Of a stretch of DNA of 64,000 bases, positions 7,523 to 53,804 are shown piece by piece. The translations under genes and the position numbers were made by a program. The stretch covers positions 52,576,001 through 52,640,000 of the forward strand of contig OZ365109.1 in the NCBI GenBank assembly GCA_977030845.1, read 5' to 3'. Numbering within the stretch: the stretch's first letter is position 1; each line of letters begins with the position of its first letter. This DNA is from Fimbriosthenelais zetlandica. Taxonomy: Eukaryota. The notes beneath the pieces are model-generated. The model was not told the DNA's origin and searched no databases. It saw only the letters and a list, made by a program, of their open reading frames with translations.

Positions 7523-7677
7523 TTACACCTTCCGATTTATGATGAGTTTGATGGAGCCCTCAGGGAGCGATTTGAGATAGCTCCAGGCAGTGAAGTGGGA
7601 CAGGTCTGAGAAGTCTTGAGCGTTGGCTTTCACTATGATATCACCGGGTTTTAGCTTCCCGTGGGCTGCGGCATCTC
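7523..7677 (-). CDS. PDZD2/IL16: Last coding exon (155 bp to stop): second half of PDZ-D
   Basis: Not in the ORF track (too short). Acceptor tgtttttatag|GAGAT. Reads (G)DAAAHGKLKPGDIIVKANAQDFSDLSHFTAWSYLKSLPEGSIKLIINRKV* with TAA at 7525-7523. Confidence 0.92.
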
Positions 7678-10600
7678 CTATAAAAACAATCAATTGAACA
7701 GATTAAAATTTGGCCAAATTTACTTCTCTTAGCATTGAAGCATTGAAAGTAGCATTGGAATAAACAAAAATGTAATTATAAGAAGGACAAAGGCACTGTC
7801 ATATCATGGCACTGTAATGATCATAATGAGCACACTAATTCGATCTTTCCGGCTCCATCCAATAGCTGCCCGAAACTATACATTTCTATGCACACCAAAT
7901 GATTGTACTTGTACGTAATTTGAACAGACCTATGGCTATAACCACTGACAAAGTTTCAATCATTGGATGCCATTAAAATTGTGGGTTCGGATGGCGTCGG
8001 TTTGGAGAATGGGATTAGTGTGTCTGAGGCTATACACTGATTTAAGTTAGCTCATTCACATGAAAGAAATAATTACCTTTGAATAATCGTTTAACAGTGA
8101 TAGGTCGATCTCCAAGTGGTGAACCTTTGCCGCCTTCCACGCAGAAGCCAAGACCCACGGCACCCTTGTTCAACTCCACCTCTAGAACTTCCCTCGGTCC
8201 TTCATCAGTTCGGGATGAGCTGCCGTTAGTCTGACTGACGACCACTGGCGGCGCCACTGTGCTAGTTCCCACTGTGAGCCGGTGGTAAGGCTTGGCGCTG
8301 TAAGCTGAGAGATATTTACTGTAAGGTTTAGCCGGCTTTGCGTTTACAGGAGGTTCAGTGTTAGTGTTATTTTCTGTGAGGGAAACAGTTTTCTCTTCAT
8401 CCGTTTGAGACTTAATTTCTATATCAGTTGAGGAGGCCGGAGTTGGTTCCTCCGTCTCTTCATCCGGTTTTAATGTGAGAGTGCTGGGTGGGGTGGCGCC
8501 ACTGTCGACCTCGTCCCCTAGTGGTGAAATTGGTGAATTATGTGGCGCGGTGGATTCAGGTGGAGAGTCAGGGTTAGGTGTGTGCACGTCTGGAACAAAA
8601 AGGTTAATTAATCTCAGTGCATTGTGGCGAATGTGTTAGTTTTGTTAAATGTTGAAAAAAGGCCAAGAATCACGATTACTGTCTTGGCCAGAACATGAAG
8701 TACCATTTTTATGTGACTAGATTTCTATCAACTTGGTTGAGTGAAGGTTAGTCTGTGATTATTGAAAGTGAACAGTTACATCCCTCTATTCAGAGTATTT
8801 GTACCTATTACCCACATATACATGTACATTTATTTCACATTTATGTACATTGGAATTTTTTACAATTTGAACATTTTTTAACGATTTGAATGCATAAAAG
8901 AAAATTAATTAATAAAAATTGCTATATGGAAAGTTTCAACACTGTCATGGTAGGACTTATGAAGAGATTCCTGGCGAACTAACCACGAATATAACCCTCA
9001 GGAATAAAAGAAATGTGTCACTATTTTTCAATCCTTGACAATTGCAATGTGTATTCAGACTGAGCACAATGCATGAAATAATGTGCACAGCAGCTTCGGT
9101 ACGTGTGTTAGATCAAAGATATGTTAAGCATATCACAGATTAAGTATGATGCCAGGGTGTGTTCAATGTGCGTTAAATTCAACAGTTAATAATGTTACAG
9201 TTTGAACGAATATTACAGCATGCATTTAGCAATAATGGTGGGATAGTTTAAAAAAAATCATTTTCCATCGTTTTAAATCTTGCTTTTTCTATTAACATTC
9301 CATGCAACTTGCATGCTGTGTAATTTGGAATTATCTTAAAACTCTTGATATGTTTGAGTGATTTAGAATCAATGTCTATAGCAATTAATTAATCATTTCG
9401 TGAAGCGAAAACTAAGGAATTTTCTCATGCTTGGCATCATTTATACACAAATTGGTGAGAGTATAGGCATTGCAAAGTAAACCAGATCATGTTTTCGCAA
9501 CCATAAACATTCAGTAATCAATATCTATATTAAATGTAATGTGTGCATGCGATTTTTCTTTACCTATAATATTACACAAAAATTTCTTTGGATCGCCTCT
9601 TGGCTACTGTAAGAGAAAGCACATATACAAATATTGGAAACACTTGACAAGGGTCATAACTGCTCTCCAATGGAATCTGATCAAGGATTATCTTCATTAT
9701 TAAAATCACTATAAAACTTACCTTTTTCCACCTTGACAGCCTCTGTTTTTGTCGTGTCAATACCAGAATCAGCATCTGAAGGTGTAGGAGAGGGAGAGAC
9801 CATGGTAACATCAGGACTGCTGAGGATGGAACCTCGACCTTCAGACATATCTTCAAGGTCGAGTTGACGGATTTTGACGCCAGCAGCAGATGGGGGTAAG
9901 CTGGCAGGTACAGGAGGCACATCATCATGGCTTGTTTCTTCACTCACGTGTTCTGCCTTGCTTTCTTGTTCAGCTGTACCATTCTCAGAGTCTTGGAATT
10001 CAGCTGGTATCTCTGGTACTTCCTCAGGTGACATCTCCTGTTGCTCAGTTAATTCTGAGTCATCAACCACAAGAGGCGTTTCAGAACTACTGCTGGTTAT
10101 GAGAGTCAAAGTTTCCGTTTCTTTGATCATATATTCCTCCACACGATCCATGCTCACATCTACTGAAGAGATGGGTAAAGATGGGGGAGGTTCTGTGGGT
10201 GGGAGAGATGGTGGGGGAACATCGGGTAGTTCTGGAGCATCTTCTACGTCATCTTTGTCATCTTCATCCACTTCTAGTTCAGAATGTGATGTAAAAGCTA
10301 CTGGGGAGGTGACCTCAATGACAGTAGAGGCATCACTGTCTTCCAGCAATCCACTGTCAACTTCAGGCTGAAGATGAGTGACAGGCTCTTCCTGCGTCTT
10401 CAATGGAAGGCTCTCTGTCACTGCTTGCTCTACTTGTATAAGCTTTTCTTCTTGGACTTCTTCTTCCATCACACTGCCTTCAGAAACATCGTCATATTGT
10501 GTTGGGGGAGCCACTAGTTCATCAGCCACCTCCTCTACTGGCTTTACTTCAACGCTGTCCTCTTGCAAAACAATATTTACGATCTCTTCTTCCTGGACCG

Positions 10601-13600
10601 TAATATCTTTTTTATTAAATGAAATTGGATTGATAGAACTTGTAACCATTGCACTAAAAGGCTTAGGACCTTGCCTCAGAGGCCTGCTGAATTGTAGTGA
10701 ATATCTAGGTTGTTTTACGACATCTTGTACTGGTTCTGGATCTTGAACTTCTTGTGTGGTTTCAGTTTGCTTTGTTGTGGGAATCTCCTCGACGTCTTCC
10801 TCTGAAGATTGCTTCATGATTTCTGACGCACTATCATCAATGATTTTCTGCACCATTGTTTCAGACATGACCTTTAGTTCTTCTGTTGACATGTACTTAT
10901 CTCCAATCTGTCTTGGCGACAACAGACCTGAGGAGGTGGATGATACATCTGAGGCAGTCGATGAGCTTCTAGATTTTGGCTTTGGCGGTATACCAGGTTT
11001 AGTAGGGACATCGGGTTTAGAGTTGCTGCGGGGCTTTGGTAGAGTGGGTGGTGGAGATTTTACCATGATTTCTACCTTGTTCTCCTGATCCTGGATGGAA
11101 GATACAGGCAGTGGTGGCTCCTTCTCGGTAGATCCTAGGGACCTTCTTGGTTTAGGTTGAGGAGGTTGTCTTTGAGCAGATATTGAACTCTCAGAGGATT
11201 CTGATTTGACTTCTATCTGTTTCTTACTGAACGATAATTCTACCTCCAGAGGGGGAGCCACTTGAGGAGTCGGAGATTCAACCTTCACTGGAGCTGTCTC
11301 TAAGTTTTCATTGTGGAATTTATCAACAATTGGTTCAGAAAGCTCACTCTCTTCTGAGACACTGAACTTTGAGTCTGACCAGTCCAAGGGCTTGTATGGT
11401 TTTGGTGTGATCAAATCCTTGGTATTAGCCATGGAATGAGCTTCCATCTGAAGTCTTATTTTGGAAACATTTGAGGTCCTTGACATATCTGGTTTCTTCA
11501 ATGTAGGTGGCTTAATACCATGTTGGAGAAGGGCAGGTTTACTTTGAGCCACAACTGGCAGGCTTTTGGCAGGTTTGATAAGGGTTGGTAGTCCTTTAAC
11601 TGGGGAAGAACTAGACGACGTTCGACGAGAGGGAATCTGGAGTCCTTTCAGACGTGTACCAGACCCTAAGCTCTCCCTACGCTTCTTTTCCAATGTGTCC
11701 ACCAGGCTTTCCTTCCTGGTACTCTGTAAAGGTGGAGCGTAGGACCTCCTTGTGTCAGAAGTGACACTTTCAGAATCAGAGCTGACACTAGATTTGGTAC
11801 TTCCAGAATCAGAATGATTTGACCGTGGAGATGAGTGTTTCCTGTCCATTGAATCATATCCTTCAAATACTGATTCTGATGATATTTGAGAAGACATCGC
11901 CCTTCTCTCCACGTAAGGATCAGTGGTATTATGAGTCTTTGGAAGAGATTCAACTTCAATGCTTTCATCCACACGAGCGTGAATGAGCGGAACAATGTCA
12001 GGTATACTTGATTTTGGTAGAGGTGGTTTAAAATCATCTGAATCACCTGACTGCAACAAGTCTATAGGTTTTTCTGTTGACCTAACAACTTGTTCTGCTA
12101 TCTCGATTTCTGCTCTCACCTTTTTTGGTTCAGCGGGTACTGACCTTTTCTTGGGAGGTGGCCTTGGGGCAGCAGGGTAGAATGTCTTTTGACCCGGTAT
12201 TCCATGAGCATGGATTTCTACCTTGTCTTTGCGCACATCAACAACTGGGTCATTGCCAAATCGGCTTGAAGCGAAGCCTGGAATAGAGGTTACAATCTTG
12301 TTATCCATGTTTTCATCAAATGCTACTGGGGCAGGCACAGATTCACTGGGCCTTGCACACTCAATCAAGTTGTAATCAGCTATATGTTCTGGAAATTCAT
12401 GACCATCAGGAGGCAGTCGTGGAAAGTCTGGTGTTTCAAAATCTTCAAGGCTACTTTTGACCGATGTTTGCTCACTTCTCTTCTGTAGCTCTTGTTTTGA
12501 TCCACTGTGGACCTCAGTAGTAACTGCTGTAGGCACCAAATGGCTTTCAGGAACCACAGTAGCTTTAAGTATTTCCCTATCACTTTTATACGAGCCTGAA
12601 TCTAACTTTGGCAGACTGGAATTTGGCAGTGTTTCTTCCACTGTATTTGATTTTAGCACGGGTGGCTTTTGAGGCAAGATATCCTGATCTTGATGTTTTT
12701 CCTCAGTTTCTGAATCTGAGCCCGAAGAACTAGATGAGCTTTTATCCTGAGGTTTTCCACTCTCTTCACCTTGATCTCTAAAGGCTTCTGACTCTCTGTA
12801 TGATTCCTCCTCCTGATCTAAAGACAGTCGATCACTTTCTGGGTCACTTGTGGTGGAAAGCCCTGAAGATTCGTCATCGCTTTCATTTGGATCCGGCTCT
12901 TGTCTGACCAGGTCATCACGCTTCTCTGACTTTGTTGATTCCTTCTCCACAACCTGACTTGTCCTGCTCTCCACTGTTGTGCTTATTGTGTGAGAAACCT
13001 TCACTGGTTGTGTCTTCAAACTGACCAAAGCTGTCCGGGATGAGAGGGGACTTCTCACTCCAGGTATCTCCTCTGTAAATATATAAGAGACAGGAAGTTT
13101 CAGAGGGAGAAATTCAACCACAGAAAAAGTCTACAAATGGTGCGAGTCCTAAACAGAGCATGACTATTATCTTCTTCTGACGTAAGTACTCCAATGGGAG
13201 ATGGTGAAGAATCTATGTTAGGAAGACGAGCAAATAAAAGTCATTCATAGAGGATGTGACATCTAAAGTACAAAAACACTTTTAATGAAAGTGATCTTTT
13301 TCCCAGCCAATTTGTCTCATTAAATTGTAAGCGATTGACATTTTAACAGGTTTTAAACAGAAGTGTAGGAAGGATCAATACTAGCGCAAGAAAGTCACCT
13401 CCTTGCATCGTGCAGGAATTTTGCGAATAATTATGGTAACATATTAGTCATCACCCTAATGCTAGATATGATATATGATTTGTTTGGAATAGAAGATCTT
13501 GTCATGCATTTGAAAGACATCTGACGTCATTGGGCATAGGAAAATCCGATTCACATTTAGGATTTCCCAACTAAATATTGAGGGGGAAAACTAAAGATTT

Positions 13601-16600: not shown

Positions 16601-19600
16601 GTAACGACTTTTGCCAAACATAAAACAAGCAGGTATGCGGTCTCTTATCATAATCCTTAACTGATCCTTATCAAAAAGTTATCATATCAGCAGACTAGTT
16701 AACGAAACACTTTTTTCTAGCTCATAAAATAGCCATAAAACACCCAGTAACAGTTACATTAAAACGGGATACCATGAGCCAACGGTGTGTCGGCTGAATT
16801 GTATACAAAATTTTAATGGATCAAATTTAATTTAGTAAATAGCTTCCAGAGCAGGGTCCGTAAGACTTATCTCGACATCTTAATTTGCTTGATACAACCA
16901 TTTAAAATCTATGGACACTATGAAGCCTTGTTCAAACAATCATACCATTTACAAAAAAAAGACTTTCCTAACAAGAGACGCAGTGATTAAGTAAGATTGA
17001 TACTAATAAAATATCGCTGTTTAGTATCTCCATACGTGACGACAGATATCCGTAAGTATACGCAAAGATAAATCAATCATTAAAAAGATACCACGATAAG
17101 ATTAAAGTTTAAATGTTTCAAGGAGCTTCGGTATTTCATGTCTCAGATAATCGAATCTCGAAATGAATTTAACCAATGTATGAGAAATATTAAATCGTGT
17201 TTTTGTTGAAGGAAAATACAATCACTATTTCAAAAATCAGATTCCAATAATATATCAATTGCAGATTGGACTTTAGAATGCCAGGGCAAGTTCGAAACAC
17301 GCTGTCGGCACACTCGAATGGCAGTTCTTTTACAGGTCTCTCACCAGCCTCTATGCTTATATTAGCAACACATCAGCAGGGGATTACATAAAGAAATTTG
17401 GACTGATTTACCACTGACAAGCCCTAGTGTACTGTAATGATCTAATCACGAGAGTGTTCATATTACACGCGGTTAACTCACCTTTCTCTACTGTCACCAC
17501 TGGATCCACAGGTGGGTTGGTGGAGGCCACAATACGGACAAGACCCCTGGGGAGAAGCCTGAAACTCTGCTGTACCCGGGAATCTGCCAGCCCTGATAAC
17601 TCAGTACCATTCAGTGAGACGATGTAGTCCCCAACTCTGTGGAAAAAACAAAAATACTCAATGTTAGACATGCATTACCAGATTAACAAGGCCACAGAAA
17701 AAAAACAGGCAGTAATTAAATTTTAATTAGATACAGACCTGTACATAACATGACACAGGTGGATTTGGAAACTGGCATTTGTAGGAAAGAAACTGAGAAT
17801 TTGGACGGCCCTGCTTCAAATGTTATAGATCACATAAGTTGAAATTTGACAGCAGTTTTACCTTATTTCAGTGTCATGGCAAAATGTTCAGGGTTCAAGA
17901 TTCAATTATATGAAGGGAGATCAAGTTCGGATTTGAAATAAATCACAGCAAAATTGAAAGTGGTTAAATGGGTTAAAGTAGCACATCATGTTACTTATTG
18001 TGTTTTTTTCAGAAAGGGATCCCTGTACAGTATAAATCCCGACTCTCATCAAATCTGGTACCTTACACCCCAGGCGTTACTTGGTTACATGATACTTATG
18101 TCCATGTGTAGACGGGCATTTCAGAAGGATATATATGTCAATCCACCTAGAATGCTAACTGTTTGAACGCCCCATTTCCTTTTTAATCTAGCACAGAGAG
18201 CTGAAGTCACATCCTAACTATTCTCAAAGCCATTCACCTTTAAGATAGCTGCCTCCTTGGGTGTACATTTTGTATGATGAAAGTATTTCTTTCAGTCTCA
18301 CACTACAACATGTCAAGGGTCAGAGTAGGCACGGTCGTAAAGAACAACCTAACGTGACGCCCTGTATTGATGGCCATTCAAGCTTTAACAATGAATAAGA
18401 ACTATATCCAAGAGGTGGCAAGTGGAATATCAACCATTTAATGTTCTGATGTGGATATGTAAGGAATGTGTTGATTGTGCCATATATTAGACAGGGCCCT
18501 GACCATGTCCTTTCTTGGTCATTATAATTAGGGACCGCACCAAGTATGGTCCCCTAATACTAGGATTGATGTAAAGATATGGATACAAAGGGAAAGTGAC
18601 TGGTTTTCCTCAGAACCTTATCTTGTCTGATCTGTATGTATTATGGTTGTGATTTCCTCTGGTAACATTGTTCATTCGTCACACTTGGTTTAAAGACTTT
18701 TAGAGTCTCTATGTATACATGTATGTGGCATAAGAAACAAGAGGACATTCTGGGCCAATCCCAACCATTCACCCATGCTGATCCCTGGACCAGAAAATAG
18801 GACCTGATTTGAGTAGGTGTATTATTTTCTCAAGGAATCTCGACTTTCTATCTTGGGAGGAGTCTTGGATGGTTTGAGTACTGTGGATACCGAAAGGCCT
18901 TTCGGGCCTAAAAAGGACTTGCATTGAAAACAAATAAAGAACTGTATTTAAAGGAAAAAAAGAATTTAGGTGGACTGAATATATATATTTAATTTTATAA
19001 ATAGTCCAGAATTCAGTACCTTGGAAAGGTGTTCTCGAACTAGTTAAATATTTTGGTTTTGCAATCTACCGAAAGGTCAAACATTGCATGAAGTCACAGC
19101 AGGTCTTAGCAATGCAATGTAGCTTAGCAATGTACCGGTAGTCCTCAGATTAAGATCAAAACCTAAATAATTCACAATCTTATATAAAAGTCTCCCTAAC
19201 ATGCATGCTCACATGCTGCTTCTCATTTCTGACTAGCAACGTGGGTATCATTAAAATGTCAAGCCTGCATTGAATTGAACTGAAATTTTCATGAACTAAT
19301 CGGTGTGGAGGTGGAGAATAATCTGGCATGCAGCACCTAATACTATTTATACCTCACATACCTGACTCTGGTAAGAATCACACAGCACCACCTCTGCCCT
19401 CCTTTCACTGATTCCTAGTTCCATGTATGTATATAGGTCCACTATGTATGTCTGTGATCAACTAGTCACCAATATCTGAGCTCAGATTCACGAGTTATCA
19501 TTGGTCTCATGTACAACTGGTTAGTTAGAGATGAGGGGGTTATAAACACTAGTTTATAGTGTACCTTTATACCAGCCTTTATCAGGTGTGCTGTATTTCA

Positions 19601-25600: not shown

Positions 25601-28600
25601 CATATTTCAAAAGAAAATATCTATCGGTAAAATTATTATTTTCAATAAAAGAAAATAGCATATACATGACATTGTAATAAGGATAATTTCCACAACATAT
25701 TCCATTTTTCGTGTAGTGAAAATAATGATCACTTTTCCAAAATTCACCAACGCAATTACGAAAGCCAGGATAATTTTTAGGATCACTTTAAATGGATAAA
25801 TACATGAAGCCTCAAAATGTTGTGCTTTTGCCAAATGACATTAAAAGATTTGTAGGATAGCACAGGTAATATAATGAAAGGGGGTGACAACTTTACCAGT
25901 GTGCTTGCCAGTATTGCTTGCATATATTTATATCAGAGAAAAATAATGACTTAAGTAAATGTTACTTGAACTTGTAGGCCTACTTACTTGATGTTTCCAT
26001 TTCTGGCCACTGGTCCCGTTGGATGTACATTCTTCACTTTCACCCGACCATCAGCGACTTCCACTTCAACGCCGATTCCAACAATGCCTTTCAGCACTTC
26101 AATATGGAAGGGTTCAGTCTCTGATCTCTTGTTTCTGACCACTCGGCTCAATGTTGGTAGGGTAGCAGATTTAATGGGCGATGGATGGTAAGGAGAAGAT
26201 GGACTCCTCAGAGAGGTTCTGATAGGAGAGTTACTGGAGGCTGAGCTAAGGTTATGGGAAGTGATGGTAGACAGAGGTTTGAGAGTTGGTAGGAGTCTGG
26301 GAGAAGGGGGTCTATTCACCTTGACAGGTGTGGTCAGGGGGGAATGAAGAGAAGGGGTGGAGGAGTAGAGAGGGGGTGTGGTCGATGGCATGCTGGTGCC
26401 TGTAGTTTTGGTAGTATAATCGTCTGATGATAAACTCAGGCTACTGGTTGCCTTTGTCGATGACTTGCTAATTGACACTTGTGTATGTCCCTTATTGTTA
26501 TCATCCACCACTGGTAAATGAGGCATGGATTCAGTCCTCCTAACTTCAGCTTGAATGGTTGTTGTCTTCATAACTTGAACTTCCTTTAAATGGGAGGTAT
26601 CCATGGGCAGATATTCATGGTCTGTGCTAGTTGAAATGTCTGGGTTGGAAGATCGCTTGTCGCCAGCTAATTCAGTGTACGTCAGTGTCTGAGTAACACC
26701 TGTGGATTCTTTAACAACCACTGAGCGAGTGTTACATTCAGTGCTTCTGTCCCCTTCTTCCTCTTCTTTCTTTCTCTCCACCACCTCCTTCTCCTCCTCT
26801 GCCCCCAGCTTGGAAATCACCTCGGCTGGATCATTGCATGCCTCACTAGCAAGCACCAATGACACGTCAGAGGGATCAAATACCTTTTCTGATCCTTCTA
26901 TCCCAGCAGTAGTTTCGGTATCATGGCTGGTTGCCCAGTCCACAGTCCGCTTGCTTACTACTGACTTAGGTCCCTCACTCACAGCTTGATCACCAGTGGG
27001 GCTCTCTGTCAAACTATCACTGTCACTTGATTGTGAGAAATCATCCGGGGTTAGACTACCTGTACAGGGTGCCGGGGCATAGCCACTGTCCAAGTTATCA
27101 CTACTCCCTCCACCATAAATCCCAACCTCATTAGGTGAATTCAAACTTTTTAATCCATCCTCCAACTCCTCCCTATCCTCTACCGACTGATCTGAGTCAG
27201 TTGAATCTGGGACCTTAATCAAACTCACTTCCACAACTTGATCTCTTTTCTCCATCCATTCCCTTGCTGCTGTCCCATAGGCTGTTGCGTTGACATTGTC
27301 AAACCCTTCTTCTCCCACTACAGAGATCTCGTTTGTGGATGACACATTGGCACTTGTTTGCTGGCTCCTCTCCGCCTCCTCCCCGGTTCCTCCCTCGTTC
27401 ATGTCTTCTTCACTAGACAAACTGAAGCTTCCGGGAATACCTCCGGTTTGGTGGTTGGGCCCTTCAGGTAAACCAACACGATCTAGTTGCTGATCTGTGT
27501 GGTAGATCACAGCGGTTGCCACCTCACGCTCCCCTAGCTCACTGCCCCTTCCACTAGTGATCCCATCTACACATACCTCACCTGTTTCTTCCTCTTTCTC
27601 TTCTTCTTCCTCTGAAGTCCACCCTGCAGGAGGAGGAGGGCAAAAAACAGGAGGGGGTTGATCTGCTGTTAAATGTTGAGATTGTTGATGTAAGGGCACC
27701 CTCATATCCTCTGAATAATTTATCACATCTCCCTCTGGTTCACTATGCTTGATCAGGACTTCTAGTACTTCCTCACTATTCCGACTATTATCAATTGAAT
27801 TCAAAGCGATAGGGCTTTGATCAATGGTAGTCGAAGTATCAATAAGCAATCCTTCAGGATCTTGTTGAACCGTGACAGTGGAATCCTCAGTCAGTTGCTG
27901 ACCCTGATTGCTTTGATCCGCCTCTTCCTCACTCTGTCCAATGCCATCAATGGTGTTTGTATGATGTGCCTTTAACAAGAAAGCTTCAGTATTCATATCG
28001 CCCTCATGATCCAGTATAGCATCTACTGTATGATCAAGGTAAACAGCTTTTGTTGTCATGCTAGCCATGGTGTAATTTTCCTCATTACCAACAGCTGGGA
28101 GGTGTGTCTCATGTAAAATCTCCCCTGACGTGTTGCCTCTATGAGAGAGAGTATGAGTAGTGGGTGTCTCTACCAATGCGATGTATTCTTCTTCATCCAA
28201 CGGCCTTCCTCTCACTGTCTGGCATGGGTCGGCTGGTCGCCACGCATTATACACCTGCCCTGAATGCATGGTAATTGGGGCCTGGGTATCAGCAGCACCA
28301 CATGCTTGGCTGCCTCTACCTCTACCACCACTCCCACCCTCACCACCACTCTCACCTTTCACCTCAGCCTGCCATATTAAGGCACTGTCCTCATAGCTCG
28401 CATGCCTTTCACTCTCAGGCAAAGGTACATCAATCAATTGTCTTTCCAAATCCTCAAATGGATTCAGCAAATCACTACTAGTTTCTCCCATGTCCAGTTG
28501 AGGGGATTGCCTATCTGTATCTCCAAGATGGGTTTCTGTCCATTCACTAACGGGAGAAGTGGTGGTCAAAAGGTCAACAGATCCTATCAACCCAGTTTTG

Positions 28601-31600
28601 CTGTTGCTACCAGATCCCTCACTTTGTAAGACGGGATCCAGCAAGTCCGAAAAGCTTTCTGGGTTTTGTTGATTGTCTTTGTTGCTAAAACCTTGAGGCT
28701 CATTGGAGTAGGGGTCAAATGTAGTATACCTGCCTTGTTTAAGGGGTAACTTAGTCAAAGTAAAGCCACTATCTCCAAACCCATCTAATTCCTCTAAAGC
28801 CTCCATTTTAGCCTGGTCCTCTTTAAGAAGAGAATCAAAATCCCTGGGTGGGATTTGGCTAAGCATGGAGCTGTGAGTGCTGCTTATTTCACCCCCTAAC
28901 AAAACCTCACTGCATGAAAAACTGACTATATCATTGCCACTCGAAAGGTCATGGTTGTTTGACTCAATGTAAGGTTGCAAGTTGGGCAATGAAGTTTGAG
29001 AAATATCCCCAGGCGATTGTACTTTATGACTTGTTATTTCAGCAGTTAAACTGTCTGTATTGCAGGCGATATCAGGACGATCTTCACCCTCAGTAGTGTT
29101 TGAGGTTTGAAGCCAAGTGTCATCCATTTGATGGAACGAGGCTGCAGCAGAAAAGGCCATCAGATCTGGCAGGGGCGGAACACTGGTGGTAGATGGTGGG
29201 GGCCCACTGGGTAATGGAGGAGGTGGTGACTCTGGAAGCTCATATTCCAAATTACCATCTTTTATCGAAATACTTTCTACACCTAAAACATCAGTTTGCT
29301 TTATCATTTCTTCAATCTGAGGTGTTGATGTTGTTTCTTGACCCGTTGGAGGAGATCTTTTGCGTGAAAACACTGGGGGGTAATCATCTAGTTCATCATC
29401 TGTGGAATCCCCAAATGATGGGATGGGAGGGGGAGGACCTGAGGGAGGGGGACCGAGAGGAAGGGGTGGAGGCATTTCAGAATCACTGTGTGAAGTTTCT
29501 ACATCAGAATCCATGCTTCCTGCTTTAGGGGAAGTTGGAGACAGCGGTAATGGCGGAGGATCCAAGTCTGCCACGGGTTGACTTAATGGCTTTGGCACAT
29601 TTATGTCAGTCTTTCTTTCCTGAATGCGGTCACTTTCAACTTCAGAAGCAGCCTCGAGCGTGTGACCTATTGACTTTGTTACATTTGATATTTGTTGTGG
29701 ATTGCCCTTTTCCCGTGAAAGCGATGGACTAGTTGTTGTAGATTGCGAGATACCATTGAAAGTCTCTGGGTACTTGCTGGGGTGAGCTCCCTCTCCTGTA
29801 CTCACTGAACTGCCATGAATCACAGCTTGATGTATGTGGATATTGGAGGAGGACTGGAGCTGGAGGCCATTATTTGCTCCTAAAGATTTACTTTTGTTCT
29901 TAACTGACCCTAAACCCTGATTACCATTGGTGTCATCACTGTCCTGACTAGTGGCTGGCGGGGATCTTCTATTACTGGAGACAGGCGACTGTCTTTGGTT
30001 TTGGGATGATCTGAAACTTCTCCGATAACCCAGTCTGACTTGAGAATTGGCAAACACCTGGTTCTGGTGGACTTGTGTATCAAGATCTAATATTTGATCC
30101 CTGCCGGTATTGCTGGAGTCCTCCGACTCGGCCCCCAGCCCGTGTTCATGTTCTACAAGGCTCTCACTAGACTGGTAGTCACTGTCCTTGGAGGACCAGT
30201 CCTTGAGGCTGGCCGGGGTACCTGTTGAATTGTTTAGGTTCTCTGAACTGCCTCTCGAACCTAAACCACCAGTATCCACAGCCAAATCTCCTACACTCAC
30301 CTCCTCCTCTCCTTCTGATTTACTGTCCCCTTCCAATGAGTCTTGTCTGAGGATCTTCAGATTGACCTCTTCTGTGGTCTGACACAATATACTCATGCAC
30401 TGAGTTTGGTCAAGTCCCCTCAGGCTATTACCATTATAAGAAAGAAGGCGATCTCCAACTTCTAGTCCTCCTTCACAATTGCACACACTATCCGGTAACA
30501 CAAACTTCACCTGAAAAGATAAAAAAAAATAATTGATTGCTTATAAATGGCCTTCTGTTCTATTCAAACGTTGTCTGGGTATACATTTTATGTGTCAGAT
30601 CCGCGATTTAAACTGATAAGGCACATGACACCATTTTCAGGGTACAATTATCCTGGTTCAATAAATAGGAAGCACTGTCAAAATCAAGAATGGACCTCAT
30701 ATGTCCCATTCAACACTCTATGTGAATCATTCTCATTTTTTATTCTGCTCATATATATGACCGCATCATGTTACGTTGGAACGCAACGTGATAATGCTGA
30801 CAACATATGTCACGTGTAAATTAACATGTGTACAGAAGGCAAAATAGTGAAAACTGAGAGTGGGAACATATTGAGTAGGTTATGGTTTATTTGATGAGAA
30901 TGGCTGAACTCAAGTTTTATGTATGAGAGAGAGGTTGAAGGTGCGAGGTCACATTTCGCCCTCGTTCGTGATCATCTGTAACCACTTAAAAAGTACATTT
31001 AATTTATCTCATGGAAAGACGGATACGCTTGACAAGCAGAGACATACAACTTTTGCCAACTACCTTTCTGACTAACTGATAAAGTTACAAAGTTGCAATA
31101 CACTATTCAAGTTTTTTGCACACATACTACTTAGTTTCTCACCAAATATATACTAGCTCATGAAAATACAGCACAAGAAGTTGGTTTGAATTCATGGCAT
31201 GATTTTCCTCGACTAAGTGTTTACAAGTCTCTCCAACTGTTATTTTATGCACATGTAAAAACTGAGAGATTAACAACTTTTTTCTGTCATACATTTCCTG
31301 TGTTTTGCCAAGATATTAACACATATAGTGTCAGGAACAAATACCTCCGGTATATACTTTACATAATGATTATAAGGCAACTCTTAGGTCTTGATCTGAT
31401 TTATATTGTTTCCTGTGAATCTGCTCTTGCCAATATCACTTATAAAGAGGGATTTATTGTACATTGTCGAAATACAATTTATACATATAAGGGGACATTG
31501 GTGTTCAGCGCACATACTGAGAAAAGATTGAGAAGGATTCATTTTCAGAAAGGAACCTGCCTGATTGTCTGCGATCCCAATATACACGAATACAAGCTCC

Positions 31601-49600: not shown

Positions 49601-52600
49601 TGGGTATGTATATTTTTAGATATGTATAAATATAGAATCCCAAAGCCGTCCAAAATTACTCTTTAGAAGGTCCCTCTCTATGGTAATTGGTGTTCATATC
49701 GTAAAAATCCCCCACAAAAAACAGATTCTGAGACTGTTAAATATTTGTTATGTCAGCGGGAACATGGTCAATATTGGGCCATGTGAGAGGTGGGGGCGTC
49801 TATGTATGTCATTCTATTACTGGCAGGCCAGGGTGATGCCAGCGAATATTAATTTCCTGCCGCAATTTTCCCTGTTTATTGAACTGGTTTGGCAAAATAT
49901 ATCAATCACGAAGGAGAATCAATATTGCAATGAAAATGAATGGTGATGAATACAGTCAGAAATTGGATCATGCAAATCTTAAATTTGACTATCATAAATA
50001 TCAATTCCTCTTTTTAATATAATAATCTTGCATAAAACAATAAACTCTGTGTAAAGAAAGTGGTGTCTATTCTTTAACATCTAGCTGTTGAATATGGAAT
50101 ATATAGCAATACCTTTTTACAATGAATATATTATGGTCCTAGATAATATCACTGGGAGGTATCAAGATGGTTTGCAAATGAGGTTCATTTGAACCACCAA
50201 CTAGAAAACAAGCATGCATACATTATCTTATCAGCATGAGAAAATGGAAATGGGACTTGTATTATAGCAGACAATTTGTAGCTAATTTATTACAACATCA
50301 AGTGTGATTCTTTTACAGGCCACACAATGCGCATCCCATCCATCAACCTGTCCCCATCTGACCCAACGTTATCCACTCCTCTTCAATCATAGCTAATAAC
50401 GACTTCCAGATGGCGAGGCCTGGCAGAGAAGCCACTCTGGAAGCCACGCTCCTAGCCGCACCAATTGTATACATTCACCCTGGGCGTCAACGAGGAGTGA
50501 GCAAACACAACAAGTGCTTTCATTTGTTGCTGCCATGTCAAATTGATATATCTAGGTTTATATGTATAGATGACGCCAATGATAACAACACAAGGCAAGG
50601 ACTGAGGGGATTCAAGGTGAGCGGGAAATAGAAGTGTTACGGGGCAACAAGGCAGTTACGAGCAGCTCACCTGGGGTTCTTTTACCTTGCTAGTGTTACG
50701 ATTTTGTTGGGCTAGCCCCAAGTTGTGTGACTGACTTTTCTATGGCCTCAGTTGCCACATCTGCCATACTAATAGCGAATCACCTACCAGACCTGTCCCA
50801 AGCTTTGTTTGGGTGCAGTAGCAGAATGCAAAGCTTGGGTGCAATTACGTAACTTACCAGACTAGCAGAGTTTCAGGGTCAACCTGGGCAAAAGGATTGG
50901 ATTATTGCATGTAGAGCGCAATATAGGCACCCACCATAGAAAGAAAACTCCTGCTAGTGCAATTACACAAGTTTGCATCAAATAAGGTAGTTGCGGCAGA
51001 AAATCTAGATGAGCAATATCATATCAAGGGAAACGATAGGTCAATGTGTTTGGAGAATTTGAAATATGCTCCTCAGATATGAAATCCATACGTCTAAGTG
51101 TCAGGGCACATTTGAATTATATTCACATGGTAAGTAAGCCTAAGGTTGTCTGAGTTTTGACAGCTTCCCATGTGTTAGGTTTCCACTGAAATAAGTTTCA
51201 TCTGGGTAGGAGGGATACCCAGGTGCGAAGGGAAAGTAGAGGGACAAGCCGAGGGGAAAAGATGAAATAAAATTCATTGTATCATATCATGTGCTTCAGT
51301 GCTCCTCTTCCCTGAACCCTGCCTGGGAATGCCAACTCGGATCAGGACGTCAGAAACTTTGACAGGGGTTTATTGCTCATAGCTGGTTTTAGTGAGCTCA
51401 ATTCATTGGCAGCCTCTGAAGTCATCTTCAGGGCAAAAGAACAGGGGGATTTCTTGAAGGCTTTCTTCCTAACTGAATGTTTCTCATGCTCAAATTTCTG
51501 CTGCTGTTATTTTAAAAGTCAACCTACCTATCAATCTTAGCTATATTATATTGCATACATACTGGTGCTGAAAAAAACATTGCTATTCAATGGACTCAAT
51601 GAAAATAGTGCTTTATGGTAAGTTTCTGCAAGAAGAAATTTACAATATATATTAGATTGACAGTAACTTACCTGATAAAACTGAGATGCAGGTTCATGAC
51701 TTGGCACAATGGTGAGACCCAGGCTTTGGTTGATCTCTTTCTTCACCCTGACATCTCTGACATGGAAGCCATTGGGAACCGCGAAAGAATTATCATTTTC
51801 AAGGTCAAAAGTCACTTCTGCCTGACCAGAACTCCTCTGCCCTGCTCGGTGGGTTTCACATTCAGTTCGTCGTCGGACCATGAGGATGACTCGGAGGGGC
51901 ATTTCCCGGAAGAAAGTCACTGTTTCTGAATAGGACACCTCTCTGAGAGGAGTCCCGTTCACTTCCAGTATCTCGTCTCCCACCCTGAGACCACAGCTTC
52001 CACCTGTGGCTCGCTCAGCCGCCCCACCCGGAGCCACTGACTCAACCCACACGCCCTTCACAAGGTCATTGTCCCCTCCTGTACTCTCTATACTCAAACC
52101 CATTCCTAGTTTCTCACCTGGAAGCCTATGTAGCACCAAAACTTCAATTTCTGTGTCATTAATATCATCAAGTAGATCGTGATCACTGACTACTGGTTCT
52201 GTTTTCCAAACAGTTTCTTGAGGTTCTTCTTCAGACTCATTTGCTGCGGTGATAACATTTTGACTATGTTGTGTTTGTTGTTGTTGTTGCGGTTCTTGAG
52301 GAACTACAGTTAAATCAGATTCAGCACCATTTGTTAAAGAGGATGAACTAACAGAGTAAGTTTCTGTCTCAATAGTCAAATCAGCCTTATCATCGGCCTC
52401 TACATCAGCCTGAGGAGGTTCATTGTCAACCACATTAATCCCATGTCTACTGGGGGAAGCTACTTTGACTGTGGTTATATTGTTCACATCAGAGAGTATA
52501 TTTGGCAATGAGTCACCATTTGTTATGCTATTAGTGGGCGACTCCAGCACCCCATTCTCCACATCCTGAGAGTTTCTTTTCAGCGACTGTTGTCTCTTTT

Positions 52601-53126
52601 TCCTCTCATATTTTTGCCTCATCTCCCACAGAAACTCTTTCTGAGGATCGAACTCTATATGGATGTCATCGATGTCTACCAATCGGTTTCGTCGCTTCTT
52701 CTTTGACTTCGAAGACACAGAAGTGATGTCGCTGGAGAGGGAGTCCCTGCTCCTGCTCTTTCTTCTGGCACTTTGAGAGTTGCTGGCCAGGTCTGTTGAA
52801 GAGGACGCAGCATCGCTTCTCTGGGAGAAAACTCCACTTTGTTCCCAGAAGCTGAAACCTTGTTCAGACAAGGGGCTGGCGAGTGGGAGTGAACTGGCAT
52901 AGCTGGAGTAGCTGGCATTGAGTTCGCTGATTGGCAGTGAGAAGCTCGGGTTTATGCCTTGTTTGTTGAGGTGGTCATCGTCCTCCTGAGGTTCTCCATC
53001 TTTGGCCAGGTCATCGTCTGCTCCTGGGTTGACGAATCCTCCCTCTACAAGGATAGGTTGGGGCCACGAGGGTGTACCGCCGGTCGTACCTGATATAGGC
53101 GCCTCAATGTCAGGAGGCTCTGAGTT
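7523..53126 (-). CDS. PDZD2/IL16: Spliced multi-PDZ protein gene, pro-interleukin-16 / PDZD2 / big bang family (at least 6 coding exons, at least 3383 aa, 5' end uncertain)
   Basis: Six exons join in frame (intron phases 0,2,1,1,1) with GT-AG introns of 21161, 8351, 4409, 1132 and 399 bp, and three PDZ domains are reconstituted only across the predicted junctions. C-terminal PDZ [33 protein letters not shown]...HFTAWSYLKSLPEGSIKLIINRK closely resembles the IL-16 PDZ as recalled (GLGFSLEGGKGS..GDKPLTINRIFKG...[23 protein letters not shown]). Which vertebrate paralogue is the orthologue cannot be resolved by eye. Confidence 0.9.
8077..8589 (-). CDS. PDZD2/IL16: Coding exon (513 bp, phase 1-1): linker with DEVD|S motif and first half of the IL-16-like PDZ-D
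   Basis: ORF 8042..8587. Acceptor ttttgttccag|ACGTG, donor TTCAAAG|gtaatt. Contains [26 protein letters not shown]. Confidence 0.92.
9722..13072 (-). CDS. PDZD2/IL16: Giant coding exon (3351 bp, phase 1-1): acidic Ser/Pro/Glu-rich disordered region, no recognisable domain
   Basis: ORF 9681..13121 (1146 aa). Acceptor atatttacag|AGGAG, donor GAAAAAG|gtaagt; phases match both neighbours. Confidence 0.88.
17482..17636 (-). CDS. PDZD2/IL16: Coding exon (155 bp, phase 2-1): second half of PDZ-C
   Basis: Acceptor ttttttccacag|AGTT, donor GAGAAAG|gtgagt. Reads (K)VGDYIVSLNGTELSGLADSRVQQSFRLLPRGLVRIVAS, which completes the PDZ begun in the previous exon. Confidence 0.9.
17950..22700 (-). mobile_element. 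Fragmented ancient LINE (CR1/L2-group-like): ORF1, APE and RT relics in order
   Basis: Reading on minus: NLRIEGQP / STCKDK / SEDA ORF1-like remnants (about 22500-22100), LSEFFKLADYNLTSVAETSF endonuclease-like (21450-21300), then GP(D) 18500, YRGVTL-like 18355, NGF 18230 and AF.VD 18150 RT-like motifs. Highly degenerate and interrupted by unrelated sequence. Confidence 0.4.
23300..23800 (-). mobile_element. Decayed LINE apurinic endonuclease relic (L2-like)
   Basis: SIAFISK (GGGVA-like position), FILLGDF (23491-23471) and QP....HTVTF (PT..GHTLDL-like) in expected order. Confidence 0.35.
25988..30510 (-). CDS. PDZD2/IL16: Giant coding exon (4523 bp, phase 0-2): rest of PDZ-B, about 1400 aa disordered linker, first part of PDZ-C
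   Basis: ORF 25984..30510 (1508 aa). Acceptor tcttttcag|GTGAAG, donor ATCAA|gtaagt. Starts VKFVLPDSVCNCEGGLEVGDRLLSYNG and ends IEVLKGIVGIGVEV...HPTGPVARNGNI(K). Confidence 0.92.
32450..33110 (+). mobile_element. Decayed LINE reverse-transcriptase relic, interrupted by the MITE
   Basis: Degenerate motifs in correct order and roughly correct spacing: Q..F (about 32470), KSNFD..I...RKYG (about 32550), MRQG.HLS (about 32790), YADD-like then VETDQAL (about 32890), VGLSARPKK (about 32985), KY(L)GIY-like (about 33075). Many stops and frameshifts. Confidence 0.45.
33114..33923. mobile_element. Non-autonomous Tc1/mariner-superfamily (Tigger/pogo-like) MITE, 810 bp
   Basis: Perfect 23-bp terminal inverted repeats CAGTGGAGTCCGCCTATAACGAA (33114-33136) and TTCGTTATAGGCGGACTCCACTG (33901-33923). 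TA target duplication at 33112-33113 and 33924-33925. Multiple subterminal TATAACGAA/TATAGCGAA repeats; no transposase ORF. Confidence 0.9.
36142..36360 (-). repeat. Diverged inverted member of the same repeat family
   Basis: AAACCATCAG...TCCCGCATG...CTCTGCAGTCCATAAAGCC (exact 19-mer at 36201-36219) is the reverse complement of the unit start. An internal direct repeat CGCAGTATACCACCGCG occurs twice. Confidence 0.8.
37060..37415 (+). repeat. Purine-rich (G/A) low-complexity tract
   Basis: Long GGA/GGGA/GAGA-rich run, for example gggaggggagaggggaggagggaggggaggggg at about 37269-37301. Confidence 0.8.
38235..38794. promoter_or_regulatory. Cluster of YY1-type (AAGATGGCGG) motifs with tandem ETS sites and E2-boxes
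   Basis: CAAGATGGCGG at 38235 (+), CCGCCATCTT at 38559 (-), and CAAGATGGCGGAAGTCGGAAGTG at 38772 (+, overlapping two CGGAAGT). A hairpin with three CAGGTG/CACCTG boxes lies at 38246-38271. Function unproven. Confidence 0.35.
39281..39925. repeat. Tandem duplication, about 264-bp unit x2 plus a partial third copy
   Basis: GGCTTTATGGACTGCAGAG starts at 39281 and 39545; the units are near-identical through GCAGTAGACCACCGGC (about 39540 and about 39801). A partial copy (TTAATACTACATCATC..TATAGTACTGTATATATG.CCCACTCC) follows at about 39880-39925. Confidence 0.9.
40383..40464 (-). repeat. Inverted copy of part of the 264-bp unit
   Basis: CGGTGGTCTACTGCATAAGCTCATAGGCAGAA.T.CCACAGTATACTTTTCCCATTCTATTTCTCCTCG is the reverse complement of about 39467-39538. 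Confidence 0.9.
41100..41700 (-). mobile_element. Decayed LINE RT relic
   Basis: TQGTLL (QG motif, about 41650) followed by ILLYANDDI (41583-41556), a WR.. motif and LADY. Confidence 0.4.
46600..46900 (-). mobile_element. Possible LINE RT C-terminal relic
   Basis: HLGLI (YLG-like) followed about 40 codons later by SVGSSEHRLEIW (VGS.L.YG.EIW-like). Weak. Confidence 0.25.
48998..49083. repeat. (AATG)6 microsatellite decaying into TGGA/TGAA repeats
   Basis: Six perfect AATG units at 48998-49021, then degenerate tggg/tgga/tgaa units. Confidence 0.85.
51672..53126 (-). CDS. PDZD2/IL16: Coding exon (1455 bp, phase 0-0): N-terminal region, complete PDZ-A (about 51867-52148) and first part of PDZ-B
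   Basis: Within ORF 51546..53159. Acceptor tattttcag|AACTCA, donor TATCAG|gtaagt. PDZ-A reads EKLGMGLSIE...VWVESVAPGGAA...LRVGDEILEVNG; the exon ends SLGLTIVPSHEPASQFYQ. Confidence 0.9.
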
Positions 53127-53804
53127 CTGAAAATATAAAATAGACAATATTTTAAACATTACATTATAACATATCTAAAATCTGAGTTATTAGATAATAC
53201 ACACAGTGCATACACTATACATAAGCAGCACTGTTGACTATATTTAGATTTGAGATTTTGAATACACTCAAGGGCTAACTGTATCATAAAAGGTGAAAAA
53301 TGGCAGAAGCACAAATCAGAAAATAGCTTTCTTAAGTTTCTTAGTGTTCTTGTGAGAAGAATGGCATTTGAGGAATGGGTCAATAATTGGTTGTTAAGGA
53401 GCAATTCTAAAACCTTCAAGCGGAATTGCCATACTTAAGAAATAAAGGACTTTTATCACTGCAGGGTATGTTGCTAAGGAGTTTAATACATATTCACTTC
53501 CAAGCATTAACTCGACCTGGAGTGTGCATTATCGAAAAGACTGTTATTTATCCCTTTTATGTACAAACGTTAAAACATTTAAATACCAATATCGTCAACT
53601 GAAGTAAGAAGTAAAATTCCAACAAGTCTGCAAAGCCCTCATCGTGTGGAGCATGAAGTTGGGAATAAGGGAAGAAATAAAGGTGGCACATCGTGACTAA
53701 GAAAAATTACCCTTGAAAGGCCATATCAATGATATATGGCTCTATTCAAAATTTAAATATATTAATCGTTGGGAATTTTTCTGCTTCATGTGTTGGGACT
53801 GGAG

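Follow-up and report, generated by a model that had tools for sequence, protein, structure and literature searches.

A candidate effector-caspase site, DEVD, ahead of the last, IL-16-type PDZ domain of a giant multi-PDZ protein from Fimbriosthenelais zetlandica

Introduction

A stretch of 64,000 nucleotides from the genome of Fimbriosthenelais zetlandica (GenBank assembly GCA_977030845.1, contig OZ365109.1, positions 52,576,001 to 52,640,000; here called the window, position 1 being its first letter) carries on its minus strand a gene for a giant PDZ protein, in which the tetrapeptide DEVD followed by Ser lies in the linker that leads to the C-terminal PDZ domain. A sequence-only reading of the window likened this domain to mature interleukin-16 (IL-16) and proposed that caspase-3 would cut after DEVD and release a small secreted factor. 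The locus thus raises the question of whether DEVD is a release site kept by selection, a site that would be cut without having been selected for that purpose, or a chance tetrapeptide in an acidic protein. The account favoured on balance makes the gene an ordinary IL-16/PDZD2 orthologue, in which a presumably exposed DEVD would be a substrate for effector caspases once these are active. A second, better conserved motif, SD[AT]DSGI, was found upstream of DEVD and is considered alongside it.

Results

Exons A, B and C (Table 1), joined in phase, gave 1355 residues without a stop codon. The splicing model is based on canonical splice sites and on complementary DNA (cDNA)-like contigs of relatives, and the same exon junctions are read straight through in such contigs of L004, L006 and L008. 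At the exon level the gene was found once in the 447-Mb genome, as a single copy. Further upstream, Pfam matches to PDZ domains lie in the open reading frames (ORFs) 51546-53159 and 25984-30510, and part of a third PDZ, its second half, is found near 17650; the product is predicted to be a multi-PDZ scaffold of at least 3400 amino acids (aa). The spliced reading confirmed DEVD in the context SPLG-DEVD-SGAT and at the place proposed for it, and likewise the length of the fragment that a cut would leave: 193 residues, with a mass of 20.6 kDa, a pI of 6.3 and one PDZ, stand C-terminal to the second Asp.

The motif has the features of a caspase-3/7-type site, since Asp occupies both P1 and P4 and the residue that would follow the cut is small; it stands 103 aa ahead of the PDZ. 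Between SDAD, at the end of exon A, and the PDZ, 80% of the residues are of the disorder type (Pro/Ser/Thr/Glu/Lys/Asp/Gln/Gly/Ala/Asn), and residues 1-130 of exon B have no secondary structure, at low confidence, in an AlphaFold2 (AF2) model. The genome contains 48 matches to Peptidase_C14, the caspase family, above the cut-off and on several contigs, all of them family-level matches. In an exposed chain, DEVD with a small residue behind it is an optimal effector-caspase substrate and is generally cut, so the protein would probably be cut there once effector caspases were active.

The composition of the protein has to be set against this. Its three large coding blocks amount to 3400 residues, of which 6.9% are Asp and 9.5% are Glu, and hold 22 DxxD motifs where about 16 are expected. 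For the exact tetrapeptide DEVD the expectation over the same length is 0.11, and at least one copy occurred in 10% of shuffles (P = 0.10). For the 235 aa that lead up to the PDZ, the expected numbers are about 0.01 for DEVD and about 1.1 for generic DxxD; the exact optimum is therefore mildly unexpected in this linker, and the presence of some caspase-like motif is not.

The assignment of the last PDZ to the IL-16 type was upheld. Its second half, in exon C, was matched by Pfam PF00595 (E = 6.8e-06), and the GLGF element, the GGKGS loop and the Trp of HFTAW are all present as first described, the columns of the loop GGKGSxxGDxP being invariant in 18 homologues. Orthologues (P0016, P0018 and P0164) stood in for the spliced PDZ and the 193-aa fragment. 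For scores against solved structures P0016, about 65-70% identical to the window PDZ, was used; it scored 77.7 bits against human IL-16 (5fb8/1i16) versus 42.6 bits against the highest-scoring single PDZ of DLG4. Among named proteins a Capitella teleta fragment matched the window PDZ best, with 64% identity. In a profile search of 1.84 billion proteins, numerous large proteins were matched at the very C-terminus. Those with names are pro-interleukin-16 of fishes, gar and sturgeon among them, and of the sea slug Elysia, as well as Patella (limpet) PDZD2; unnamed giant proteins came from chiton, whelks, Lingula and amphioxus. A Capitella PDZ protein is a further named relative. As judged from sequence, the gene is an orthologue of the IL-16/PDZD2 family in a probable annelid, and the only member of that family in this genome; its fly counterpart we take to be Big bang.

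The exon structure agrees with this family assignment. Every exon-level ORF match drops in similarity right after LFKG/FKG, and the same donor follows LFKG in the window, L001, L005 and L014, so that the intron within the last PDZ is common from worms to vertebrates. It is a phase-1 intron (window 8076-8077) and occupies the identical place in every exon-level homologue, vertebrate-IL-16-like sequences included. In the cDNA-like contig of L008 (about 950-1100) nine extra residues, DEISENQQI, stand exactly at the FKG intron position, and may represent a retained or alternative splice form.

The Trp of the second helix, whose side chain would occlude the peptide groove as in IL-16, had been offered as a hallmark of IL-16. 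The residue is there, but 38 of the 42 PDZs compared within the family have it, and of the four that lack it three are read-through artefacts; it is accordingly a trait of the whole family and is not diagnostic for this gene. The first residue of the same helix (window 7583-7600) divides the family, being His in the window and 17 relatives and Arg in 19, human IL-16 included. Ordinary class I PDZs read their ligand through a His at this position, and the invertebrate IL-16-type domain may therefore still bind peptides. The AF2 models were of low quality, with mean predicted local distance difference test (pLDDT) values of 44.2 for the orthologue P0016 (9-row alignment) and 54.3 for exon B of the window (11 rows).

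Only one close relative was found, L001 (P0001), from a Logan assembly. Deeper lineages were collected from homologues of exon A together with a metagenome scan, and all carry the marker block at the end of exon A; the intermediate relative P0002 stands outside the comparison of DEVD, its ORF beginning downstream of that region. Where the window has NSPISPLG-DEVD-SGAT, L001 has NSPLSPLG-DVVD-GAAT. The two are distant at silent positions, since 59% of four-fold sites differ within identical residues (distance about 1.15), and the intron between the exons does not align. The linker is 54% identical despite these near-saturated silent sites, which indicates general purifying selection on it; 65% of all Asp residues and three of eight DxxD motifs are kept in L001. 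On this pairwise comparison what L001 shares is a DxxD with a small residue after it, not the exact DEVD, and retention at this level is statistically unremarkable.

In four deeper lineages, L005, L004/P0016, L006 and L014, the DEVD segment is absent. No DxxD-type motif was present in the linkers of L005 (53 residues from block to PDZ), L004/P0016 and L014, and that of L006 has only DKGD followed by Leu. The 238-residue linker of L008 holds DQVD/S (a slash marks the putative cut), in a sequence that cannot be aligned to the window. In a shuffle test the pre-specified pattern D..D[GSAN] occurred in two of six lineages with P = 0.12, and D.VD[GSA], picked after seeing the data, occurred in two of six with P = 0.0006; there is in this a hint that similar motifs recur in the linker. 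With DVVD/G in the nearest relative and the segment missing from the deeper ones, DEVD appears to be young and lineage-restricted. In L005 (7900-9100) just about 130 bases of intron separate the giant exon from the PDZ exon, which has shrunk to about 61 codons, and linker length is thus very plastic in this gene.

The block at the end of exon A behaves differently. Its core, S-D-[AT]-D-S-G-I, is invariant in eight lineages (window, L001, P0162, L005, L004, L006/7, L008 and L014), while the linker that follows ranges four-fold in length, between 53 and 238 aa, and can mostly not be aligned. The core includes SDAD, which the sequence-only reading had listed as a secondary caspase site; the motif is present, at 9779-9768 and not, as given there, at 9780-9766. 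In the human IL-16 chain, PDLNSSTD-SAAS, the cut is likewise flanked by Ser at P4, Asp at P1 and Ser at P1', and other vertebrates have PSAD/A, STD/S or ITAD/T at the same place. Degrons of the beta-TrCP type, on the other hand, follow the consensus D-S-G-hydrophobic-x-S/T, an example being DSGLDS of IkappaB-alpha, and the residue five after the Asp of DSG is Ser or Thr in six of the eight lineages and Lys or Tyr in the other two. Read in this way, SD[AT]DSGI suits a caspase site in the style of human IL-16 just as well as a DSG degron of the beta-TrCP type. No such block was seen in the mollusc, brachiopod, amphioxus or vertebrate members examined. SD[AT]DSGI is a better lead than DEVD.

Three further candidates were set aside. 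SRTD/E, the third caspase site proposed at first, is present just ahead of the PDZ; a charged residue at P1' makes a poor caspase site, the motif is lost in L005 and Capitella, and relatives have PADD, AADE, TPDDE or no Asp at all at its position. A possible origin of the DEVD island as an internal copy of the SDADSGI block (as SPxSPxxxDxxDSG) was dropped, the likeness being too short and requiring a gap. A DEDSGI motif in two vertebrate proteins lies far from the C-terminus and was not counted as a homologue of the block.

Discussion

In the preferred account, an IL-16-type last PDZ is preceded by a selectively constrained linker, predicted to be free of structure, in which DEVD/S would be a young and lineage-restricted motif; effector caspases, when active, would probably cut there and free the one-PDZ fragment, much as human pro-IL-16, PDZD2 and the crustacean proteins are processed, each at a position of its own. 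If processing is old in this lineage, the SD[AT]D/SGI block would be the likelier conserved site or regulator. Several observations weigh against this account. The DEVD island is identical to L001 at 10-11 of 15 residues, and 29% of 15-residue linker windows reach 11 or more; retention of both Asp is expected in about 40% of cases at the average constraint of the linker. The test that the sequence-only reading proposed, conservation of DxxD among orthologues, yielded DVVD/G in the one close relative, and DxxD with a small residue is absent from the linker in four of the six independent lineages that bear the upstream block. The linker of the Capitella model, 30 residues long up to the neighbouring PDZ, contains no Asp. 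The human site, SSTD/S, is not a DxxD motif, and a canonical DEVD is therefore not what the family uses.

Two readings of DEVD compete with the one preferred. In the first, DEVD/S is a selected release site, and a caspase-3-type cut yields a secreted, 193-aa IL-16-like factor for immune or neural cells. The optimal motif in an exposed linker would suit this, as would the DxVD with a small residue kept in L001 at a synonymous distance of about 1.15, the second, unalignable DQVD/S in L008 with the low P value of its post hoc pattern, and the chemotactic activity of leech HmIL-16 (PMC3710617). The pre-specified pattern, however, gave P = 0.12 only, the segment is missing from L005, L004, L006 and L014, the Capitella linker is free of Asp, the protein lacks a signal peptide and the Trp is family-wide; the proposal is judged improbable. 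The converse reading, that DEVD arose by chance in a disordered region rich in Asp and Glu and is not cut meaningfully in vivo, draws on the one in ten shuffled proteins that have at least one DEVD, on the abundance of DxxD overall, on the ordinary conservation of the island and the retention of only three of eight DxxD in L001, and on the absence of the motif in deeper relatives. It is at odds with the very low expectation for DEVD in the 235 aa before the PDZ, with the retention of both Asp and of Val at P2 while silent sites are near saturation, and with the general susceptibility of an exposed DEVD plus small residue to effector caspases, and is regarded as rather unlikely.

A different proposal places the important element in the invariant SD[AT]DSGI, as an ancestral caspase site or as a phosphorylation-dependent DSG degron through which a beta-TrCP-like ligase would control turnover or processing. 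Invariance in eight lineages next to so variable a linker points this way, as do the conserved SPSPTP stretch that precedes the motif, the Ser or Thr found in most lineages where DSG-hydrophobic-x-S/T calls for it, and the agreement of P4, P1 and P1' with human NSSTD/SAAS. The invariant Gly-Ile behind the cut is more than caspase specificity would call for, the Lys or Tyr in two lineages stands where the degron needs Ser or Thr, and the mollusc, brachiopod, amphioxus and vertebrate members examined show no such block. This is held to be a serious possibility, if somewhat short of an even chance. Going further, SPSPTPSD[AT]D/SGI could be the ancestral processing switch of annelid pro-IL-16-like proteins, at which kinase signalling chooses between release of a PDZ fragment of the HmIL-16 type and ubiquitin turnover, with lineage-specific DxVD/S sites such as DEVD as later additions that raise the efficiency of release; this combination is a speculation to which a very low probability is given.

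The precedent invoked from the family, C-terminal PDZ fragments set free by caspases, does exist. In human pro-IL-16, caspase-3 cuts at Asp510 and frees a 121-aa fragment (PMC11788625). Human IL-16 (1i16, 5fb8) and the window protein share GLGF, GGKGSxxGDxP, the Trp of the second helix, the exon end after FKG and a flexible segment with Asp then Ser before the C-terminal PDZ. They differ in the first residue of the second helix, Arg in the human protein and His in the window, and in the setting of the site, since SSTD/S stands about 21 aa before the PDZ and right after the neighbouring PDZ, whereas DEVD/S stands 103 aa before it and after a disordered exon of about 1130 aa.

Crustacean IL-16-like proteins (Eriocheir sinensis, Litopenaeus vannamei, Scylla paramamosain) resemble the window protein in being invertebrate multi-PDZ precursors. 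Caspase-3 splits EsIL-16 of the crab E. sinensis into a prodomain and a C-terminal fragment; the latter is secreted and acts via integrin beta-1, and a cleavage-site mutant loses this 34-kDa product (PMC8326423). This crab fragment holds two PDZs, with the site (S1062-D1075) before both, whereas a cut at DEVD or SDAD would release a single PDZ. The same paper states that among invertebrates IL-16-like genes were unknown outside arthropods (PMC8326423). For the leech Hirudo medicinalis, HmIL-16 was published in 2010 (Croq et al.), and reviews describe it as chemotactic for leech microglia and human CD4+ T cells (PMC3710617, PMC8047420); it is an annelid IL-16 homologue, as the window protein probably is.

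Vertebrate PDZD2 and Drosophila Big bang are, like the window protein, giant multi-PDZ scaffolds in which disordered regions are long and the last PDZ is of the IL-16 type. Big bang is a junction and apical scaffold, and we know of no report of fragment release from it. A role of Big bang in growth has been described (PMC5839798). PDZD2 is cut near its C-terminus to give the secreted sPDZD2, which holds two PDZs where the window fragment would hold one (PMC3995063).

With HmIL-16 published in 2010 and processing known in crab and vertebrates, the inference of cytokine release already existed, annelids included, and an IL-16-like factor is not new to invertebrates. Added here are a specific gene model, a candidate site that is optimal in sequence but young, and a candidate block whose conservation runs deep. 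They make a modest new example of a known mechanism and leave the current picture unchanged. If the cut does occur, the protein would be a very clean substrate, with an optimal DEVD before a single PDZ, and would allow release of IL-16-like fragments to be tested as an old protostome trait, tying the activity of HmIL-16 to a defined precursor and site. The SD[AT]DSGI block is the more useful product, as a precise and mutable target for the study of processing or degradation of giant scaffolds.

Other features of the gene

Table 1 Coordinates of the exons, motifs and conserved islands in the window.
Feature	Position	Strand	Remark
Giant exon A	9722..13121	-	at least 1133 codons (ORF list: 1146-codon open frame); homologous exon ORFs in relatives
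Donor of exon A	GT 9721-9720	-	GTAAGT after 9722; read from sequence
Exon B	8077..8589	-	125-aa linker and first half of last PDZ; ends at family-wide intron after LFKG
Splice sites of exon B	acceptor AG 8591-8590; donor GT 8076-8075	-	canonical
Last exon, C	7523..7677	-	second half of PDZ; acceptor AG 7679-7678; stop codon 7525-7523
DEVD (GAC GAG GTC GAC)	8515-8504	-	in SPLG-DEVD-SGAT; then Ser at P1' (8515-8501)
Island NSPISPLG-DEVD	8504..8539	-	closest relative: NSPLSPLG-DVVD-G
Block SEGRGSILSSP-x5-SPSPTPSD[AT]DSGI-x-[ST]	9753..9845	-	end of exon A; nearly invariant across lineages
SDAD	9768..9779	-	cut after it would leave 237 aa, 25.2 kDa; 44 residues upstream of DEVD
SD[AT]D/SGI	9779-9759	-	DSGI (9770-9759) starts at last Asp of SDAD; reads as DSG-type degron core
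SRTD (then Glu)	8215-8204	-	third candidate caspase site of the sequence-only reading
First half of IL-16-type PDZ (REVLEVEL ... GLGF ... GGKGSPLGDRPITVKRLFKG)	8077..8194	-	invariant columns among homologues
GLGF	8155-8144	-	spliced reading
GGKGS (in GGKGSPLGDRP)	8134-8120	-	spliced reading
HFTAW	7597-7583	-	exon C; His is first and Trp fifth position of second helix
Tyr-rich island KPYSKYLSAYSAKPY	8285..8329	-	in linker; identical in L001, recognisable as RTYSRYSLSAYSAKPY in P0002
Conserved island VSMDRVEEYMIKETETLTLI	within the pair 10098-10157 and 10311-10343	-	exon A; identical in closest relative
Conserved island EDSDASTV[IV]EV	within the pair 10098-10157 and 10311-10343	-	exon A; common to two relatives

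The Tyr-rich island of the linker is conserved further out than the DEVD island and is not known to match any motif.

Exon A (window 9722-13121) is disordered and acidic/Ser-rich, and a Pfam scan of it returned no domain. Its homologues in three relatives are exon ORFs of 1124, 1201 and 1212 aa. This disordered exon of about 1130 aa sits between the last PDZ and the preceding one. Elsewhere the spacing is just 30-110 aa (Capitella model, molluscs, Lingula, amphioxus, vertebrates), and in the first of these the one PDZ follows directly on the other. Exon A might be lineage-specific or alternatively spliced.

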